Below, piece after piece: positions 20,201 to 44,341 of a stretch of 64,000 nucleotides of DNA. The notes below the pieces were generated by a model. It worked only from the letters and a program-made list of their open reading frames with translations, did not search any database and was not told where the DNA came from. The position numbers and the translations under genes were made by a program. Origin of the DNA: Ruditapes philippinarum (lineage: Eukaryota). The DNA lies in NCBI RefSeq assembly GCF_026571515.1, contig NW_026855186.1, forward strand, positions 1 to 64,000, given 5' to 3'. Numbering within the stretch: position 1 is the stretch's first letter; every line of letters begins with the position of its first letter.

Positions 20201-23200
20201 GAGGAAACTGAATTACGAGGCAATGAACCAGTTTCAAGAACAGTTGATATAGATAAAACTCTTGGAATGCAAATTTCATTCATCTTTCATTTTGAAGAAG
20301 AGCTGCCTTACATTCGTATAACATCACCTAATGGTACTCTCTACGGACCTGACTCAAACGTTTACTCTGTTGATGAAACTTCAAAAGCGATTCAGTTTTA
20401 TTTCCCGCACATACAGGTAAAACTCGCGTCTTTTACGACTTCTTTAGAATCAGAGACAATTTATTAACAACATGTATATAGATGTATGCCTCCATATTAG
20501 CCAAAATAGTTTAAGAAAATATTAAACTTTAGAAAACTGTACTAAGAGTTGAAAGAAAAGTAAACTGATTCATGTTATAATTAACGTGATTGTTTTGTGC
20601 GATTGATGATTTTGCAGTATTTTTCACCATATTTCTACTGCGTGACTAACAAATAAAGGCTATTTTTTGCACATTTTGACCTCCTTTTGTTCATTGACGT
20701 GGATTGTAAAGTGCCGTTTGCAATGTGTTAATTACTTTTCTTAGTTCACTTCACAATGTTTTACTTTTGTATACATTTTTGAAAAATTTCATGAAAATTA
20801 GCTGGAATATGGAGGCATGCTGCTTAGAATAAAAAAAATTATCTTCCTTTCATGGTAAAGACCACGCCTAATTTGCCTAGAGTTTATTTACATAGATCTT
20901 GTTCATTTTTTATTTTGATTTATCAATGTTTTTATTTACATAACTTTATCTTAGATAGTTTAATCGTTACAGGTTGGAACATGGACGTACACCTTGTCAC
21001 AATCATCGATGACGTCACAAAAAGTACGTGTTACAGTTATTTCTGAAAACATCGCTGAACACGAAGACCCGCTAGTCTTGCGGCAGTCTGTAAAATTTGC
21101 AGACGACACAAATACATCTGTGATTCTTCATGTTGACGCAACACAAGGGGCGAGTCCCTTGATAGGCTTTAATATCACAGCAAAGGTAGGGACGCCAGAT
21201 GGAACAGTGGATTACTTGACACTTCTAGATAATGGAGCAGGTACAATAGCTAAAGAATCCCGTGAAGTTTGAATACAATCTAAATACTAGTAGTTGATAA
21301 TCTTATTTATGCGATGACAATATTTTGTATGAAATTGAAGTTGCGTTCAAGATACTTTTATTATTGTCATAAAAGGTGAATAAAGAGGTTTGCATTTATA
21401 AAGAAGGTTTCATATTAAAACGTACAAATTGATACCTTCGCATAAATCTAATTTTGCCTTTTAAGGTTAACCTTTTGTACTGAATGTTTCAATATGCTCA
21501 AAACCGGTAAGAAGAAACTTTTGTTTTCCTTATTTATAGAGATAGATAAATGTAAGGTTTATGAAAGTAAACCTACATAATTTATGATATTTGAGATCTT
21601 AGATATTTTATTTTACCCAGTGATCAGTCACTAGCAGATATTGTGTGTTTTTTGTCGTAGGAGCTGATATAGCAAAGAACGATGGCATTTACTCGCGTAT
21701 TTACATAGCGCCAAAACTAAGTGGATCGTATCACGTGACATTCATAGTGTCGTCTGGTGGTTCTGGGTCTGTTTTCAGGAAAGAAGAAACAGCGTCAGTC
21801 GTTAATGATGGTATAAATATAAGTATTTCAATTTTTAGGGGAAAATATACTAGATATGATGCATACATAAAATCTCAAAAATGTAAAAAAGGTTCTGCAA
21901 TTATCTGCAGTTACACTCGACAAGGTCTGCTATTAAAGCCACTGCTGTTAGAAAGGTATCTAGAATAAAATATGAATGTCATCTACTCGCAAGAATTATT
22001 TTTAAAATCACGAAGTGCTCGATCTAAACATTCTATTTTCTTCTTCATTTTCTTAAGTGAACGCTACAGTTTAGACAAACAAAGCCAAAACACTAATTTC
22101 CAAGGCTGTCTCGTTTCACTGACTTCGCGCAGACTAGAAATACAAATCATAATATTTAGTCTAAGTTTGATACGTAAAGGATAATCTGTTGAGTATACTA
22201 GACCTAAATTTGGCTAAAGTACAGTTGTTTTCACGAATTGCCAAACATGAGCAAGAAGTGATTACCGGTATTCTGATTTGTTTGAAATGTTTCAGAGCTT
22301 AATCCAGTCAGAAAATCCGTTAGAAAGATACCATTAGACGGAAACATTCAAAGGCAAATTTCGGGTGGAACAATATTCTTGCGTTCCTCGAATCTTAATG
22401 ACCTCATCTTTGACGTCATAGCACCATCAAGAATTATTGATCTCAGAGCGGTGACGTATGTTCCATACAGAAAAACAATGGTGTTAGAATGGACAGCTCC
22501 CGGCGACGACCATGATCACGGAAAACGTAAATACAAAGATGTGGTTTAATTTTGATAAAATCAAGATACAAATCCTGCAAATTTTGTTGTATCATGCACA
22601 CAGTCTACTGTAATGATAAATCAAATACAATTTACACGTTATTCCATAATTCCAAAACTTTGCTTCAGGTTACATAATATATTTTTATAAGTTTTAGCTC
22701 ACCTGTCACAAAGTGACAGGATGAGCTTTTATGATCGCTTTTCGTCCGGCGTCCGTCCGTAAACTTTTACTTTAAATGACATCTCCTAATAAACCACTGA
22801 GCCAATTTCATCAAAACTTCACAGGAATGTTTCTTTGGTGGTCACCTTTAAAAATTGTTCAAAGAATTTAATTTCATGCAGAACTCTGGTTGCCATGGCA
22901 ACCGAAAGAAAAAACTTTAAATTTTTTCTTTTAAAAAATCCAAAGAGCTACAGCTTAGATATTTGGCATGAAACATCTTCTTGTGAGTGTCTACCAAGTT
23001 TGTTCAAATAAAAGCCCTGGGGTCAATATTGGCCCCGCCCCAGGGGGTCATTGATTTTTCCTATATGCATATATTAAAAACTTAAAAAATCTTCTTTTAG
23101 AGAACCTAAAGAGCTAGAGCTAAGATATTTAGCATGAAACATCTTCTAATGGGTGTCTACCAAGTTTGTTCAAATAAAAGCCCTGGGGTCAAAATTGGCC

Positions 23201-24381
23201 CCGCCCAGGGGGTCATTGATTTTCCTTATATGTGTATAGCAAAACTTAAAAATCTTCTTTGAAAAAACCCAAATAGCTAGAGTTTAGATATTAAGCATGA
23301 AACATCTTCTAGTAAGTGTCTACAAAGTTTGTTCAAATAAAAGCCCTGGGGTCAAAACTGGCCCGCCCCTGGGATGTCATTGTTTTTAACTATATGTGTA
23401 TAGTAAAAACTTAAAAAATCTTCTTTTAAAGAACCCAATGAGCTAGAACTTAGATGTTTAGCATGAAACATCTTCTTATGGGTGTCTACCAAGTTTGTTC
23501 AAATAAAAGCCCTTGGGTTAAAATTGGCCCTGCAGGGTGGGGGGGGGGAGGTCATTGTTTTTTCATTATATGTGTGTAGTAAAAATTTAACATCATGAAA
23601 CATTTTCTAAGGTGTGTCTTCAAAGTTTGTTCAAATACAATCCCTGGGGTTTAAACTGGCCCCGCTCCGGGGGCCTATATACAGGTGAGCGACCTCAGGG
23701 CCATCATGGCCCTCTTGTATATTATAATCTTGACATGTAAAAATGTCCCTGAGCTTCTTGGCGTTAGATCTTAGTAAAACATTTGGAGGCTCGATCAAAT
23801 ATGTATGGCACGTTTTATATATGAGCCGCGTCATGACAAAACCAACATAGTGGATTTGCGACCAGCATGGATCCGGACCAGCCTGCGCATCCGCGCAGTC
23901 TGATCAGGATCCATGCTGTTCGCCTACAAACCATATTAACAAGTAGATAAACTGAAAGTGAACAGCATGGATCCTGATCAGACTGCGCTGATGCGCAGGC
24001 TGGTCTGGATCCATGCTGGTCGCAAACGCACTATGTTGGTTTTGTCATGTCGCGGCTCAATTATAATTCATCACCAGATTTTACCATCGTCATTTAGATC
24101 TAGTGTTTTAGATCCTGTTTTACTTTACAGCTGATATCTACGAATTTGTTGTCGGTTGTGGGGTCAAGGACGTTCGTCTTTTTTTGAACTATCTCTCCTC
24201 TGGTGATTACAAAGGTCAAGGTAACGTGATACAAGAAACATTCAACGCACGTGCAAATGGAACTGAAATTGAAACGTTTCTATGGAGTACAGTTGGCAAT
24301 GACAAACCGTATATATTTGCTATTCGTGCTGTTGATAGGTTTGGCAACAAAGGCCAATTTTCAAACCTTGTCACAGCCTAA
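11255..24381 (+). CDS. CLCA: CLCA-like protein, paralog 2, complete (~878 aa, signal peptide, no C-terminal TM); predicted catalytically inactive
   Basis: 13 exons: 11255-11437, 11796-12087, 13414-13596, 13849-13988, 14796-15050, 15445-15648, 17479-17635, 19328-19425, 20192-20416, 20973-21240, 21661-21810, 22296-22526, 24131-24381; total 2637 nt, open frame. N-terminus MSKFLRMVVFIVGICMLALFKPAFG (signal), then LKNNGFTNVVVAIHESVPED, ILLPSTW, GCGKQG, FRWGVFQEY, DNGAGADIAKNDGIYSR and FnIII-like WTAPGDDHDHGK. Confidence 0.95.
18930..19087. mobile_element. Palindromic end of a non-autonomous DNA element, same class as 4286-4465
   Basis: Hairpin centred on CACTCGTGGCTACGCCACTCGTG, ending CAAACAAATATCCTCT (reverse complement of the 4288 start). 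Confidence 0.55.
20484..20830. mobile_element. Old MITE-like repeat
   Basis: Inverted ends ATGCCTCCATATT / AATATGGAGGCAT; interior and right end are similar to ~41490-41695. Confidence 0.5.
22692..23718 (+). mobile_element. Non-autonomous Helentron-associated (HINE/pearl-like) element with internal ~165-bp tandem array
   Basis: 5' TTTTAGCTCACCTG plus hairpin CTGTCAC-aaa-GTGACAG and (GTCC)n microsatellite; ~4.5 units each containing AAGTTTGTTCAAATAAAAGCCCTGGGGTC; 3' subterminal inverted repeat CAGGTGAGC and terminal hairpin AGGGCCATCATGGCCCT; no TSD. Confidence 0.8.
23822..24059. mobile_element. Palindromic (fold-back) MITE, ~238 bp
   Basis: ~100-bp near-perfect inverted arms TGAGCCGCGTCATGACAAAACCAACATAGTG.. 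/ ..CACTATGTTGGTTTTGTCATGTCGCGGCTCA; second copy at 42661. Confidence 0.9.
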
Positions 24382-28439: not shown

Positions 28440-29387
28440 ATTATAGTAATTGCATTGAAACGTGTTATCTGAACTGGTCTGTTTACGGATAACAGTGTGC
28501 CAAATTCGTTTTACAGTCCTTTTAAACATAGCAAGTAAATAATAATTAGTAATTTGTTTCAAACTTCTTTCACACCTGTAATGACATTTAACTTATTCCT
28601 TTTTCTCTTTTAAATGATAAATATCATCTCATATTGCTAAGTTATGTGGAAAGGTTCGCCATACTAAGATTATCAATAAAACGCCCTTTTACTTTATACA
28701 CAGTTGTATCTTTATCTGTTAAAATGTTGATACAAAGTCCACATTTATTTTATCTTCCAGATTGATAAACCTACCTAAGATACTAAGTTTTAATTGTTAA
28801 CATAGGCTGTAGTTATATTATACTAGCTTATTAAGAGTTGAAGAATGAATACCGCTTAATCATGTCCCATGAAGCTTTTGGGATGGAGCACTGTTCCATT
28901 ATGGCATTATCCCTATGAACAGACTCAATGAAACCAAGTCTGCAATTTTCATTTTTTGATCCAGGGATCCCGCCTTTTCAATATTTTAAAACATTAACGT
29001 GATGAAAGTAATAAAATATGATAAACAAGATCAACAAGGAAAGGCGGCGTTCAATGAACGCAACCCCCATATGACCCAGCAACAAGAACCAACGGCAAGG
29101 AGCCCAGGCGGACCCCGAACAAAAACAGGACAGGGCAAAGACAGAGCACGGACAGGTTAATCATTAAATGATAAATAATTTGGAACTGATTAGGAATTCA
29201 AAGAAAATAATAATAGGCCCACAAAGGGGACAGGAGACCGGGGGAAGGGGGGTGGGGGTAATTAAAGAAATAAAAACTAGAGGCAATGGGGAAGATACTT
29301 ACCGTAGACGAGAAAACAACAAGGGACACAAGCAAAAGTGTCACCAAAACAGTATGAAACAACATAGACATACATCTGAGGAACACA

Positions 29388-29482
29388 GTGGGGCGCCGCC
29401 TTGGAACGGTCAGCAGCATAATAATGACTGCTGGGGAGTTTAAACCGGTTAATGGTGCACCAAACCTCGCTCTTAGCCCCAC
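29388..29482 (-). ncRNA. Candidate twister-like self-cleaving ribozyme, type-P5 permutation
   Basis: Manual fold: P5 GUGGGGC/GCCCCAC; P2 GAGC/ACUC; L1 GAGGU and UUU^AA; P1 UUGGU/ACCGG; P3 CAGCAG/CUGCUG; bridging A; P4 CCG/CGG; 8-nt L4 UUCCAAGG able to form both pseudoknots. Confidence 0.6.
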
Positions 29483-29700
29483 CATGTTCCTATAAACGAG
29501 ACAGTGTAAATAAAATGAATCCCCGCCAAGTGAAATTCTAACAGTTGTCATGGTTACAAAAGGTTAAATAAGTAAAACACTAAAATGATCATGTAGAAAC
29601 ATATAAAAGTAAACCCAATGACCATAACAAAAGTACTCAATGTCCTAAAGGAAGACAGAGCAACAAGAAAATCACCTACAAGGGCCCGACGAAGCAAGGC

Positions 29701-29759
29701 AGAAGACGAACATTAAGACAATTCAGTCCCAAAGGGCTTTACGAACTATCCATCATAGA
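29701..29759 (-). promoter_or_regulatory. SECIS-like hairpin, split from its helix-I 5' strand (30059-30065) by an insertion
   Basis: AUGAU, 10-bp helix GGAUAGUUCG/UGAAUUGUCU, unpaired AAA, mini-stem CCC-UUU-GGG; 3' core reads UAAU rather than UGAU. Confidence 0.5.
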
Positions 29760-30051
29760 ATAGATAAATACAGAATCCCTAAAGAAAGCCCAACACGGCA
29801 AAATTGAAAATGTTGCAGGCTCGGTTTGATTGAGCCTGTTCATGGACGGTACTGGAAAGTGCAAGTTACCGTCCACGCCCCCTAGCACCGGCTTAAGCAG
29901 AATTCAACATTTAAACATGAAATAGTAAAATTTTGAATTTAGAAACATCCGCAGATGTGTTCATACGGCGGTTATCATGGAACCTTCAATGTGACACTTC
30001 CGTGCCATTCCATGAAAAGCGGCGTATGGTCCCCAAGTAATAAAAAGCGTC
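29760..30051 (-). mobile_element. 292-bp structured short interspersed element, copy A
   Basis: Flanked by 7-bp direct repeat TCATAGA (29753-29759, 30052-30058); absent at the homologous site of the second retroelement copy (~44400). Orientation is arbitrary. Confidence 0.85.
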
Positions 30052-30644
30052 TCATAGAGTCTCCCACTTGGTCCGTCAGATGCAATCAAAAGAGGAAAGC
30101 GTAGTGTCCAACTGTAAAAGGATTGAACACTAAACATGCAGTATGTCTTAAAATAGTAGGGTCACAACCTCTTTTAATAAAACGTTTAATGATGTTAGTA
30201 AAAACAGCAGAAAATTATTATGACCAAAAATCTTACAAAGTGGTTTGTAAATCACATCACCATAAAATTCAGATTACGAAGAATTGTTTAAAAGCGCTAT
30301 TGAATTTTGAAATTAAATCAAAATTACGATTGTAAACTTTTGTAAAATATTTCCGTAATTTATGATAGCGGTTGCCCTGCTTAAAAAACTTGCTAGTAAT
30401 GAAAATATTACGCTCGTTGTTATCCTTTACGTTGCTACAAGCTCTAGCGAATCTAATTAACTGAGAAACATAAACCCCGTAAGATGTTGCATGGGGTACG
30501 TCTCCATCTAAATGTGGATAATTAACTATACAAAAGTCAAAGTCATCTCTTTTATCATAGATTTTCGTGTGAATAGAATTGTTGTTGATAGTAATATGCA
30601 GATCCAAAAATGATGTATTAAATTTCAAGAGTTCGTTTTATTAA

Positions 30645-30936
30645 ACACGCTTTTTATTGCTTGGGGACCATACGCCGCTTTTCATGGAATGGCACTTAAG
30701 TGTCACATTGAAGGTTCCATGATAACCGCCGTATGAACACATTTGCGGATGTTTCTAAATTCAAAATTTTACTATTTCACGTTTAAATGTTGAATTCTGC
30801 TTAAGCCGGTGCTAGGGGGCGTGGACGGTAATTTGCACTTTCCAGTACCGTCCATGAACAGGCTCAATCAAACCGAGCCTGCAACATTTTCAGTTTTGCC
30901 GTGTTGGGCTTTCTTTAGGGATTTTGTATTTATCTA
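30645..30936 (+). mobile_element. 292-bp structured short interspersed element, copy B
   Basis: Near-identical inverted copy of 29760-30051; 9-bp direct repeat TTTTATTAA (30636-30644, 30937-30945); interrupts the RT frame at ..LQLNK/TNS. Confidence 0.88.
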
Positions 30937-33900
30937 TTTTATTAAGTTGTAGTTCATGCGGATAAATGTCAGACACCATTTGATCAAAATAAGGATTATC
31001 TAAATTAAAAATATCATCAAGGTATCTGGAAGTATTATTAAATGCGACTATAACATCTTGTTGTTTATCTTCAGAGAGACTCAACATAAAGTCTCTTTCA
31101 TAGAAGTACAAAAACAAATCGGCGACCAGGGGTGCACAATTAGTACCCATAGGAATTCCTATGATCTGTTTAAATAGGGTATTACCAAACCTGACATAAA
31201 TGTTGTCTAAAAGAAAAGAGAGTGCTCTACAAACTTCGTCACAGGTCCACATAGTATAATGTTTAACAATACCGTTAGTAAAAAAAGCTTTGTTAGAATT
31301 ACATGCTAGAAAGGTAACTTTTTCCCAAACGAAACCCAAAACGAAAATAACCCGATCAGCTAGAAGAAAATGTTTTTCATTGACATAATCATATAACAAG
31401 AAATGTAAACCACCAATAAGATATTTTGAAAAATCCCTATACTGACTGCTTAGTTTAATTTTTATTTTGACGTGTCTATTACTAATAATGGGCTAATAAA
31501 TCAAAACAGATGCAAGTCCTGCATACACAGTCTGCAATGTAATACATGTAATGAAAACGTGTATGCAACTTCTTAATTAAAACTGTGGTTGCAATATTGT
31601 ACTGTGAGACAAAATGATGATATACAACAAATTAGTGTTGTAATATTTCTGGTCCTTCGTGATCATTGATTCGTTGAAATTTGAGTACCGCTTAAGCCGG
31701 TGCTAGGGGTGTGAGAAATGTTGCACTTTTTCATTACGTACAGACTCAATCAAACCGAGTCTGTCAATTTTCATGTAATTGTGTTGTGATTAATTTTTCC
31801 GAGGGATATCCAGATTTTTAATTTATTTTTATGCGACAGTTTCAAAATAATAAACGAAATAAATATAGAATCGAGGTAAAACAATCAGATTTATTGGTAA
31901 GCATTCAACTAGACTAATTATTAAGACCCAGTTTTCTAGAAAATAGTCTATTGGTGTAGTAGTCCAAAGCGTAAAAAAACCTGTTAGCAACATAACTTAT
32001 AAAAGCATTCAACAAAGAATAATTATCAAATGTAATCAATGACAGAATACTTTGACCTAAAGTAAAAAGTTTCTTTTTTTCTGCAGAAAAAGTTGACTTT
32101 CCATCTAACCAAGGCAGCTACTATTGCGGGGGTCTAGCTTATGGAACATCTTGAGATGTTAGAGTGAATTTAACCGAGTCTGCAACATTTTCGATTTTGA
32201 CTTGTTGGACACTTTTTAGGGATGCTGTTTTCCTCTATTTTACAGTCGCATTAGTGATATTTTTGCCGTGTGGTGGCTGTAAGAATTTGTCATTCACCAA
32301 AACATTAATATAATCTAAGATTAAATTCTTAATTTTATAAGTAATATATATGTCTCAGATTTATGGCAGAGAAAGTGATGTCAAAATCCTAAACCACAAA
32401 GCCAAAAATTGTATTTTTATTGTAATGTGCATTGTCACTTTTGCACGTTGCGTTTTCGCTAGCGACAACATAACAAATCTCATTTTCGTCTTGCGTCTTG
32501 TCGCTACCCGACATTGCTTTATGAATAGTAGCATATATGCATAATGCTATGTAGTTTTAAATTGTGTTATTTTGTTCAGCCACTTGGCAACCTCGATTCT
32601 AATTGATACTAATTGAAAATGTCGCGTAACTGAATTCTCCTCGCTGATTTTCTATCATTAGGTTTGTTGTTGGTTTAATTTGGAGTCATTAGCTTCTACA
32701 AGCTTGTTAAAGAAAAAAGGCTTTTAATCAACACAAGTTAACGATAATATTTTTTATTTAAAAATTCTCTGTATTAAACGAAGCAATCAAAATAACTCCA
32801 TTGATTGAAGTTATTACGAATGGATGCTTGCTTTTTTTTCGAGCATCATAAGCAGCTTTAGATTATTTTCTCTTTTCGGAACATTAATGAACCAGATGTA
32901 TATTAACCATTTTCCGGCTTAACAACCTTGTCAAAAGCATTCACCATTTAAGAAAAATAAAAATAAGAACTGATTGAATAGCTAACAATGCAGACCACGA
33001 TCACACATGTTACTGCTAGATTAGTTTGCGCTGGTTGCATAGTTATATTCAATTGCCAAGATCAACAGGTGGTGTTATTTACACCCCAGTAAATTGATGA
33101 AGGAATGGCGTAATTTACTCCCAAGTAAATTGATACCGTAAATTTTACAAGGTGTGATTGAACAAAAACAATGACGTCACGATTATATTATTAGTTATAA
33201 ATATTTTGATAGTTTTGTTTTGCCCTATATAAACGATTGTTTGCATATATAACCTGAGCGAGGTAATATTGTAAACAACTGTTTATATGCGCCCATATTA
33301 CCAGCCAGATGCCTTAAAATCGAATTTATAATACAGCAACATCCATTTTTAGAGAAAAGTAAGATGTTTTGGTAAATTGACAGCTGCCGAGTATACAAAA
33401 TATATAAACGTCACGAAATGCATAAATGTAAAAGAAACAGTGAATTTGAGAGAAGAAGCCGTACGTTATCACGATCAACACGGGAGAGGAAGTGTTACAC
33501 GAGCGATCGAGTTCTTATGATAACTTGTCAAGGAGTTCTTGTGATAACTGTCACGGAGTTCGTCAGAAAACTATTGTATATACTGCAAAAACACTCGTCA
33601 AAATGGTAATTTTCATCTTTAAACAGTGACTTTTAGGTGCTAAATTAATCTTTCAGTTATCATAAGAACTCCATCCATCGTGTAACAATTCCTCCTCCGT
33701 GGATCAAACCGGTGGAAAATTCTCTCGCTTCGAATCTGGTAACGCGCATTTCAGATGAAGTACGGGACGAAACATCATGACAAAAAGTCCCGTGTGTCCG
33801 GAAAATTGTGGAGAAGGTTATCGTATGTACCTTTACACCAGGACATCATGAATTATGGGAAAAAAAAGAGGAAAACACTACTTTTCGGCGGCATCTGCCA

Positions 33901-42897: not shown

Positions 42898-44051
42898 AAT
42901 TAAACTGTATACCACTTAGATCCAAGTATTGATTTTGAATTATTTTAGTCGAGTATACATTTATGCAGGCGTCACACTGTCCTGACTTTGGCATCAGATG
43001 GACACACGAATTCGGATCTGATCGTAATAACATCGTGCCATTCGAGAGGGTATCTTTTGCCTTCGTATGATCCCCGGCTTAATATTTCAAGCTCCGGCAG
43101 CAACCCCGCGAGCGGTTCCAAAATTTTTTGGCATGCCAAAAAATTGCCCGAAGACATTGCGAAGGTTCATTTTCGTGTTGAATTCGTCAATTTTGCCCTT
43201 CGTAAGATCGTCGTGAAGCCATCTTGTCAAATTGTGTAGTCTTCGTCTTTTCTACGTGTGATCATCGGTGCAATCTGGCAATTTTAGTAAACACGAAGAT
43301 TCCCGATAGTCTTAAATGGGAACACGACTATGTGAAGGCCCCGCAATACCGCCATGTCACCATCGTATTTTAGTAAGATGTCATCGAGATGGGACCAATT
43401 TTTAATTGAAAGAAAGCAATTTTTAATGGCTCAAGCATTGCATGTTTAGCATCGTGGACATATAAACGGCTGGACCATCTTCCTCATCTGTCACTCTTGC
43501 ACATCTTTACAGAGACATCAAAAGCTTCCATTATTTGCAATTAATTTACAATTATTTTCAGTTTATTTCATGCAGATTAACATGCTTTGGTGATGAGTCA
43601 ACCAAGAAAAAGAAGGCAGTAGCAATGTAATTTTAAAGACACCTTAGAAAATATGATGAGGCCCACAGCCCCACTTGGGTGGTATGATAAAGTTTAATCA
43701 AATATGATAAACAAGATCAACAAGGAAAGGCAGCGTTCAATGATCGCAACATGTACTCACACGACCCAGCAACAAGAACCAAGTAAAACAACAGGACCCC
43801 CCCCCCCCCCCCCTAAAAAGGGCGCAAGGTTGAGCACGAATAGGCTTATCACTTAAATGATACATAAGACGAAATAATGGTAAACGACAAGGAAATCAAA
43901 GAAAACAAATAAATGATTGATTGATCAAATAAATAAAACTAGGGGCAAAAGGAAACATACTTACCGTAGACGAGAAAACAACAAGGGACACCGGCAAAAG
44001 TGTCACATAAACAGTATGAAATAACAAAGACGTGCATCTGAGGAATAAAGA

Positions 44052-44140
44052 GGGGCGCCGCCTCGGACCGGTCAGCAGCGTAAGTACTACTGGGGATTTT
44101 AAACTGATTAATGGTGCATCAAACCTCACTCTTAGCCCAC
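44052..44140 (-). ncRNA. Candidate twister-like ribozyme (type P5), second degenerate copy
   Basis: Same fold as 29388-29482 with P1 UUGAU/AUCAG, P2 3' GAGU, P3 CAGUAG/CUGCUG; L4 mutated to GUCCGAGG. Confidence 0.5.
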
Positions 44141-44341
44141 CATGTTCCTATGAAATAAAATGAATCCACGCCAAGTGAATTTATAACAGTTGTTATGGTT
44201 TCAAAAGGTTAAAGAAGTAAAACACCTAAATGATCATGTAAATATAAAGGAATACCCATATGACCATAACAAATGTACTCAATATTTTAAAGGAAGCCAG
44301 AGTAAGAAAAAATCACCTACAAGGGCCCGGCGAAGCAAGGT

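Follow-up and report, generated by a model that had tools for sequence, protein, structure and literature searches.

Self-cleaving RNA motifs of the twister class have been described in retroelements at the 5' end of Perere-3 in Schistosoma (PMC8501958), and were mentioned, as unpublished, for RTE elements (PMC7761336). The Perere-3 motifs are type P1 twisters that are carried in hundreds of copies by a non-LTR (TPRT) element, with L2 GC, L4 GUCCCAAGC and a weak or variable P1, and their cleavage was shown in vitro and in reporters. Penelope-like elements, by contrast, are known for hammerhead ribozymes, which lie near the 3' end in the pseudo-LTRs of canonical elements that insert as partial tandems, and whose small variants are reported to act as dimers (PMC6765202, PMC8557442; Cervera & de la Pena 2014 and Lunse et al. 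2016 as cited therein). The Naiad clade of Penelope-like elements dominates bivalve genomes and was reported to lack canonical hammerheads, which led to the idea that the ribozyme is dispensable for these elements (Craig et al. 2021, PMC8557442). In the type-P5 twister (Rfam RF02684, clan CL00120), the order of parts is an open P5, the P2 3' strand, GAGGN, a closed P1 region, U^AA, the P2 5' strand, a 2-nt L2, an optional P3, P4 with an 8-nt L4 of the UNCCAAGN type, and then P5. Its termini lie in P5, P1 and P3 are closed by loops, and the P1 helix ends one nucleotide before the cut; a four-pair P2 flanked by L1 has the UAA cut site on the 5' strand and GAGGG on the 3' strand, pseudoknot T1 has three Watson-Crick pairs between L4 and the L1 3' strand, and pseudoknot T2 pairs the L2 dinucleotide with two bulged L4 nucleotides. 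We compared these systems with a motif in a 64,000-nt stretch of the Ruditapes philippinarum genome (GCF_026571515.1, contig NW_026855186.1, positions 1 to 64,000; hereafter the window). We found no paper that linked twister to Naiad or other Penelope-like elements: the word occurred 0 times in the main text of PMC8557442 and in a 2026 preprint, and 0 papers held both 'twister' and 'Naiad', although this did not extend to Roth et al. 2014 and its supplement or to the supplementary files of PMC8557442 (consensus sequences, HHR_core notes) and PMC8501958 (2060 T-variants in invertebrates and others), which could already list these mollusc motifs.

A sequence-only reading of the window had proposed a type-P5 twister-like ribozyme in the 3' region of a Penelope-like element, with a second copy that carried compensatory or compatible changes. 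The observation held, in that the minus strand reads exactly as described and its segments fit the twister layout (Table 1). The unconstrained fold already formed P5, P3 and P4 (-36.4 kcal/mol, z = -2.49, with 3 of 200 shuffles as low). Enforcing the twister P2 cost only 2.1 kcal/mol (-34.3 kcal/mol) and yielded the P1 that had been proposed (UUGGU/ACCGG). Two details were only partly confirmed. First, the P2 3' strand of copy 2 is GAGU, but its 5' strand has also changed to AAUC, so one pair is gained and another lost; copy 2 is an old, decayed copy, and the evidence drawn from it is weak. Second, the proposed P1 register did not exceed the controls across relatives, as detailed below.

Table 1. 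Coordinates of the features in the window. RNA positions run along the minus strand (29483 minus the window coordinate).
Feature	Window coordinates	Strand	RNA positions	Description
Whole motif, copy 1	29388-29482	-	1-95	Type-P5 twister-like motif, 95 nt
P5, 5' strand	29476-29482	-	1-7	GUGGGGC, pairs with 29388-29394
P5, 3' strand	29388-29394	-	89-95	GCCCCAC
Linker		-	8-10	UAA
P2, 3' strand	29469-29472	-	11-14	GAGC, pairs with ACUC (3 Watson-Crick pairs plus one A.C mismatch)
L1, 3' part	29464-29468	-	15-19	GAGGU; its GG pairs with the CC of L4 (pseudoknot T1)
P1 region	29442-29463	-	20-41	Two perfect palindromes; ends in UUU just before the predicted cut
First palindrome	29453-29462	-		UGGUGCACCA
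Second palindrome	29443-29450	-		AACCGGUU
Predicted cleavage site	29440-29442	-		U^AA, predicted cut between U41 (29442) and A42 (29441)
P2, 5' strand	29436-29439	-	44-47	ACUC
L2	29434-29435	-	48-49	CC, pairs with the GG at the end of L4 (pseudoknot T2)
P3 hairpin	29411-29433	-	50-72	CAGCAG, 11-nt loop, CUGCUG
P4 and L4	29395-29410	-	73-88	ACCG/CGGC with an A.C outer mismatch
L4	29399-29406	-		UUCCAAGG, 8 nt
Second, older copy of the motif	44047-44141	-		L4 mutated to GUCCGAGG; P2 carries a mismatch
Naiad-type element, copy 1	29013-31326	-		5'-truncated (at position 521 of L051, a young copy); interrupted twice by a ~293-bp insert; 3' end about 375 nt downstream of the motif
Tail of the element, carrying the motif	29013-29759	-		
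SECIS-like hairpin	29703-29764	-		Just after the ORF stop; coordinates carried over from L051 1496-1557 (this copy starts at L051 1501)
Reverse-transcriptase fragment	30269-30628	-		Same sense as the motif
Reverse-transcriptase fragment	30890-31399	-		Same sense as the motif
Open frame covering the motif	29198-29551	-		117 aa

We next examined the repeat to which the motif belongs. The 27-nt core occurred 2832 times in this 1.4-Gb genome at up to 2 mismatches, against 0 for the reversed pattern. A 651-nt query gave 1756 candidates, of which the 40 scored were 95-100% identical. The copies share a 3' end (44 of 57 end at L051 2239-2245) and start anywhere, indicating 5' truncation; an apparently fixed 5' end only reflected the truncation of the query copy. 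Head-to-tail and inverted motif copies were found in three loci (L061-L063). The motif lies about 310 nt after the ORF stop and about 370 nt before the 3' end. The 95-nt motif of copy 1 was letter-identical in 24 of 29 BLAST-picked young copies and in 5 of 30 pattern-picked copies, whereas the element around copy 2 was 82-87% identical to L051. A protein search of this genome returned only this one family.

The ORF of the element has a YLDD reverse-transcriptase motif but no Pfam hit at E 0.01, and relatives gave only weak RVT_1 hits. It carries PADKA followed eight residues later by TGA, a TGA at the first Cys of a CxC motif, a third TGA in RT6(D), after the YLDD motif, where relatives have S or L, and a KR-rich block. 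The DKA motif (DKG in other clades) and the CxC motif upstream of the RT were read in one copy (L073) as PADKAANNIIIV and T-TGA-D-C. A hairpin just after the stop scored 33.0 bits with Rfam SECIS_1 (cut-off 35; E 0.00015) on L051. These are the features given for Naiad-clade Penelope-like elements and for their selenoprotein-encoding families in clams, including the TGA in RT6(D) described for Naiad_Scon, the SECIS right after the stop, 5' truncation, and partial tandem and inverted copies (PMC8557442). Here, however, a TGA also replaces the first Cys of the CxC motif. No N-terminal GIY-YIG endonuclease was seen in the copies read, a set not assembled by looking for an EN-bearing full-length copy, and similarity among 6 of 10 copies began at the KR-rich block. 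One GIY-YIG hit was rejected as support for a Penelope-like identity, since that ORF lies in flanking DNA outside the element.

Rfam did not recognize the window's own motif. The whole window at the gathering score and three small slices at E up to 10, one of only 111 nt, gave nothing of ribozyme type. RF02684 gave no match in the genome at E up to 10, with only 80 of 14721 candidates scored, and 20 related loci gave none at the gathering score. Moreover, 16 further loci at E up to 0.1 gave no ribozyme, and no hammerhead or other ribozyme class was found in these scans or in L051 1400-2300. We therefore looked for relatives through the protein instead of the motif. There were 7326 database proteins at E up to 1e-5, and a scan of metagenome contigs with an alignment of six of them gave 65 loci at 31-100% identity. 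A covariance model (R1) built only from seven of these foreign sequences found the motif on the sense strand in most of them, and scored the window at 67.8 bits (E 3e-14, at 29385-29482) and the second copy at 53.1 bits; a second model (R2) gave 80 bits for copy 1. Of the 24 loci whose match reached the C-terminus and that had at least 400 nt downstream, 23 had the motif, starting 292-863 nt after the match, with L089 as the exception. The most distant relatives (L124-L133 and L136, at 31-37% identity to protein P0003) and L089 showed no motif with either model. One subgroup (L111, L115-L117, and L121) looked near-canonical, and Rfam's Twister-P5 model aligned L115 over all 58 model positions at 23.4 bits (E 0.0027), below the 37.6-bit cut-off. 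That alignment fixed the homology of every part, including the UAA cut site, whose placement also followed the rule given in PMC8501958.

Covariation was measured on 25 distinct sequences. In the full structure 87.0% of cells were paired, against 67.7% in shuffles (0 of 500 reached it), 20 of 26 pairs changed on both sides, and the covariation score was 0.495, against 0.163 in shuffles and 0.075-0.117 when partners were slid. The nested helices were counted on an alignment fitted to them, which leans towards the structure, and the sequences are related to each other. However, the two pseudoknots were not part of the model, and alone they gave 80.0% paired against 70.3%, and a score of 0.282 against 0.116 (0 of 500). 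All 7 P5 pairs changed on both sides. The outer P2 pair was UA 9, GC 8, AU 2, CG 2 and UG 1, while one inner P2 pair was unpaired in 14 of 25 rows. Five of 6 P3 pairs changed on both sides, with 95% of cells paired. The G-C pair closing P4, which in the twister consensus is invariant and closes an 8-nt L4 of the UCCCAAGC type (PMC5408937), was present in 25 of 25 rows; the outer P4 pair was AU 11, CG 6, GC 1, UG 1 and other 5, and the third was CG 15, UA 9 and AU 1. The first T2 pair was CG 15, GU 4, AU 3, UG 1 and other 2, and the second was CG in 24 of 25 rows. The T1 pairs were read by hand, with the parse of L109, L110, L140, and L144 corrected. The T1 pair nearest the loop center (27-47) was C-G in 20 rows and U-A in L109, L110, and L092, and the third pair (25-49) was C-G in 6 rows, U-A in 3, G.U in 2, U.U in 13 and A.A in 1. 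These pairings are the ones described for twister (PMC5408937). The AA of the predicted cut site was present in all 25 rows, and the UAA, GAGG and CCAAG strings of the twister core were kept, CCAAG in most rows.

The window's lineage departs from the twister consensus. L2 is CC instead of the conserved GC (PMC5408937), matched by GG at the end of L4, so that the T2 pair is flipped; C at the first place of L2 is shared by 15 of 25 rows, whereas the near-canonical subgroup has GC or AC. The lineage belongs to the U.U group at the third T1 pair, leaving two Watson-Crick pairs, while Rfam's Twister-P5 consensus has GAGgG at L1. P2 and P4 each carry an A.C at the outer pair, where relatives have A-U, C-G, or G-C. 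Two extra U precede the cut U, which is three, not one, nucleotides after the best P1. Across relatives this P1 register scored 0.205 against 0.143, with 27 of 500 shuffles reaching it and a slide of -1 giving 0.237; P1 is reported to be dispensable, with loss of efficiency (PMC8501958). A mini-hairpin AAAC/GUUU was weak. In place of P1, two adjacent perfect palindromes recurred with different sequences, at least one of 8 nt or more in 21 of 25 rows and both in 12 of 25; the first palindrome scored above shuffles, but a slid control was as high. Their central four letters are themselves palindromic in every variant, which a hairpin loop would not need. The P1 region was predicted to dimerize at -19.3 kcal/mol, against -2.6 kcal/mol as a monomer. 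Compared with the Perere-3 motifs, strings are shared, namely a CUCC-type P2 and GAGGG followed by UUGG (GAGGU UUGG here), but the motif here is type P5 and lies in the 3' tail of a Penelope-like element.

We further investigated if signs of cleavage could be seen. Four raw-read runs were aligned to L051 1300-2300. Two of them (X21 and X22), labelled RNA-seq, had equal depth on both strands and thousands of loose ends starting at GATC, behaving like GATC-ligation DNA libraries, and were not used as RNA. The other two (X23 and X24) covered the motif only 2-8 fold, continuously across the site and with no pile-up of ends, a depth too thin to tell. None of 29 pattern-picked genomic copies started at the predicted site, so most templates that were copied back into DNA were uncut there. 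By analogy this is expected for hammerhead-bearing Penelope-like elements too, whose ribozymes also sit inside the copied pseudo-LTR (PMC6765202).

Together, these results partly supported the sequence-only interpretation: a type-P5 twister-like structure in the 3' region of a Penelope-like element, without a hammerhead, was supported, whereas the proposal that this lineage uses it to process its RNA ends remained an inference. With moderate confidence, we consider the stretch a circularly permuted twister-class RNA motif that is a conserved module of the 3' untranslated tail of a Naiad-clade element. We regard it as a real, selected, twister-class structure for which catalysis is plausible but unproven. 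Our analysis showed the homologous motifs after the ORF in relatives from many other sources, the covariation of the four nested helices (P5, P2, P3, and P4) and of T1 and T2, and the retention of the core strings. That the RNA folds as a twister and cuts itself between U29442 and A29441 is inferred; cleavage would leave a 2',3'-cyclic phosphate on the ORF-bearing piece and a 5'-OH on the last ~430 nt. By analogy with the hammerheads of other Penelope-like elements, cutting at two successive motifs in a transcript of tandem or partial-tandem copies would release a unit-length RNA. The derived variant in the window may cut slowly, or only as a dimer held by the two palindromes. A conserved twister-class motif at the place equivalent to the hammerheads would say that a self-cleaving RNA is a general part of this retroelement type, and that the class of ribozyme is interchangeable. 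It would also add thousands of natural twister variants with a flipped T2 pair and no canonical P1, useful for understanding what the fold tolerates, and would place a stop codon, a SECIS, and a ribozyme in one short 3' cassette.

A more speculative reading, which we regard as unlikely but not excluded, is that Naiad elements did not lose their ribozyme but swapped the hammerhead for a twister that works as a dimer. In this view, two RNAs, or two units of a tandem transcript, must pair through the self-complementary tracts, which change sequence between lineages but stay palindromic, before either can cut. This would tie self-cleavage to RNA dimerization and to the tandem insertion habit of Penelope-like elements, as reported for their small hammerheads (cited in PMC6765202), and would make the motif a case of a possible dimer-dependent twister. 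It is an idea, not a result.

Of the alternatives, the one that survives best, though we hold it less likely, is a twister-derived fold that no longer cuts and is kept for another job in the element's tail, such as recognition of the template by the reverse transcriptase, RNA dimerization or packaging through the palindromes, or RNA stability. The loss of L2 GC, the third T1 pair, and a canonical P1, the absence of Rfam matches, the genomic copies and RNA depth that run through the site, and the palindromes kept by covariation favor this view. However, the unpaired core strings are kept across relatives down to about 34% protein identity, and the changes that did occur in T1 and T2 are compensatory, which fits selection on the active twister fold. 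Moreover, canonical Penelope-like elements keep working hammerheads at the same kind of place, and their genomic copies also run through the ribozyme (PMC6765202). It is improbable, as a full account, that the motif is only a fossil at this locus. In this view both window copies sit in dead, broken elements and do nothing, whatever the family's motif does. Copy 1 is 5'-truncated and twice interrupted, copy 2 is diverged with a mutated L4, and most of the ~2,800 copies are truncated, but this concerns the locus instead of the motif and is compatible with our favored explanation; the 95 nt of copy 1 are identical to the family's majority form, and if transcribed, for example within a host transcript, copy 1 would behave like any other copy. 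Chance resemblance or conservation of a coding frame was rejected, although a 101-131 codon open frame overlaps the motif in this genome (101 codons in L051), since the covariance-model E-values are 3e-14 and lower, the reversed-pattern control gave 0, 12 of 18 loci have no open frame across the motif, P3 loop lengths differ by numbers that are not multiples of three, and the changes in stems are compensatory.

We further examined the reading frame and tail of the retroelement using two copies of the family, L051 (a young copy) and L073. Three in-frame TGA codons were found, two of which stand where relatives have Cys (the first Cys of CxC, and 8 aa after DKA), whereas one is in RT6(D). A near-hit to the Rfam SECIS_1 model (33.0 bits, cut-off 35) follows right after the stop, but its 3' side reads UAAU where the model has UGAU. 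In copy 1 of the retroelement, a ~293-bp element is inserted twice, in opposite orientation and 97% complementary, and it splits the ORF end from the tail. In the P1 position of the predicted twister-like motif in copy 1, two adjacent perfect palindromes were present, and at the same place in 25 aligned rows of related motifs at least one of 8 nt or more occurs in 21 and both occur in 12; these change sequence between lineages but stay palindromic, including their central four letters. An open frame of 101-131 codons overlaps the motif in this genome's family, in L064 and likewise in L065 and L066, but it is absent in 12 of 18 related loci. Of the relatives, L089 is the only one with a complete C-terminus and 1647 nt downstream that shows no motif with either covariance model.

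Coordinates of additional features in the window and in copies or flanks of the element
Feature	Sequence	Coordinates
Three in-frame TGA codons	L051; L073	L051 919-921; L073 1577-1579 and 1990-1992
SECIS_1 near-hit	L051; window	L051 1496-1557; window about 29703-29764
~293-bp element, inserted twice	window	29755-30050 and 30647-30942
Two adjacent palindromes	window	29443-29462
Open frame overlapping the motif	window (-); L064	window 29198-29551 (-); L064 5176-5478
Region used for comparison of sequencing runs	L051	1300-2300
GATC sites at which reads run off	L051	1670/1673, 2226
Last ~60 nt of the element, high RNA coverage	L051; window	L051 2184-2251; window about 29009-29076
ORF with weak GIY-YIG hit	L049	115-1104
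Tandem array	window	22912-23673

Sequencing runs were compared over the 3' part of L051. Two of them (X21 and X22) are labelled RNA-seq cDNA, yet both strands have equal depth and thousands of reads run off into unrelated sequence exactly at GATC sites, which looks like proximity-ligation DNA data. In the two true RNA runs, the last ~60 nt of the element are covered 40-120 fold, against 2-8 fold for the rest of the tail. This could reflect many very short 3' fragments in the genome, or a stable small RNA.

Two more features were located outside the element. An ORF in the DNA flanking one truncated copy (L049) has a weak GIY-YIG hit (22.8 bits), and it may belong to another Penelope-like element next door. 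Elsewhere in the window, a tandem array consists of ~165-bp units that are 85-93% alike (repeat families D1, D2, and D10).
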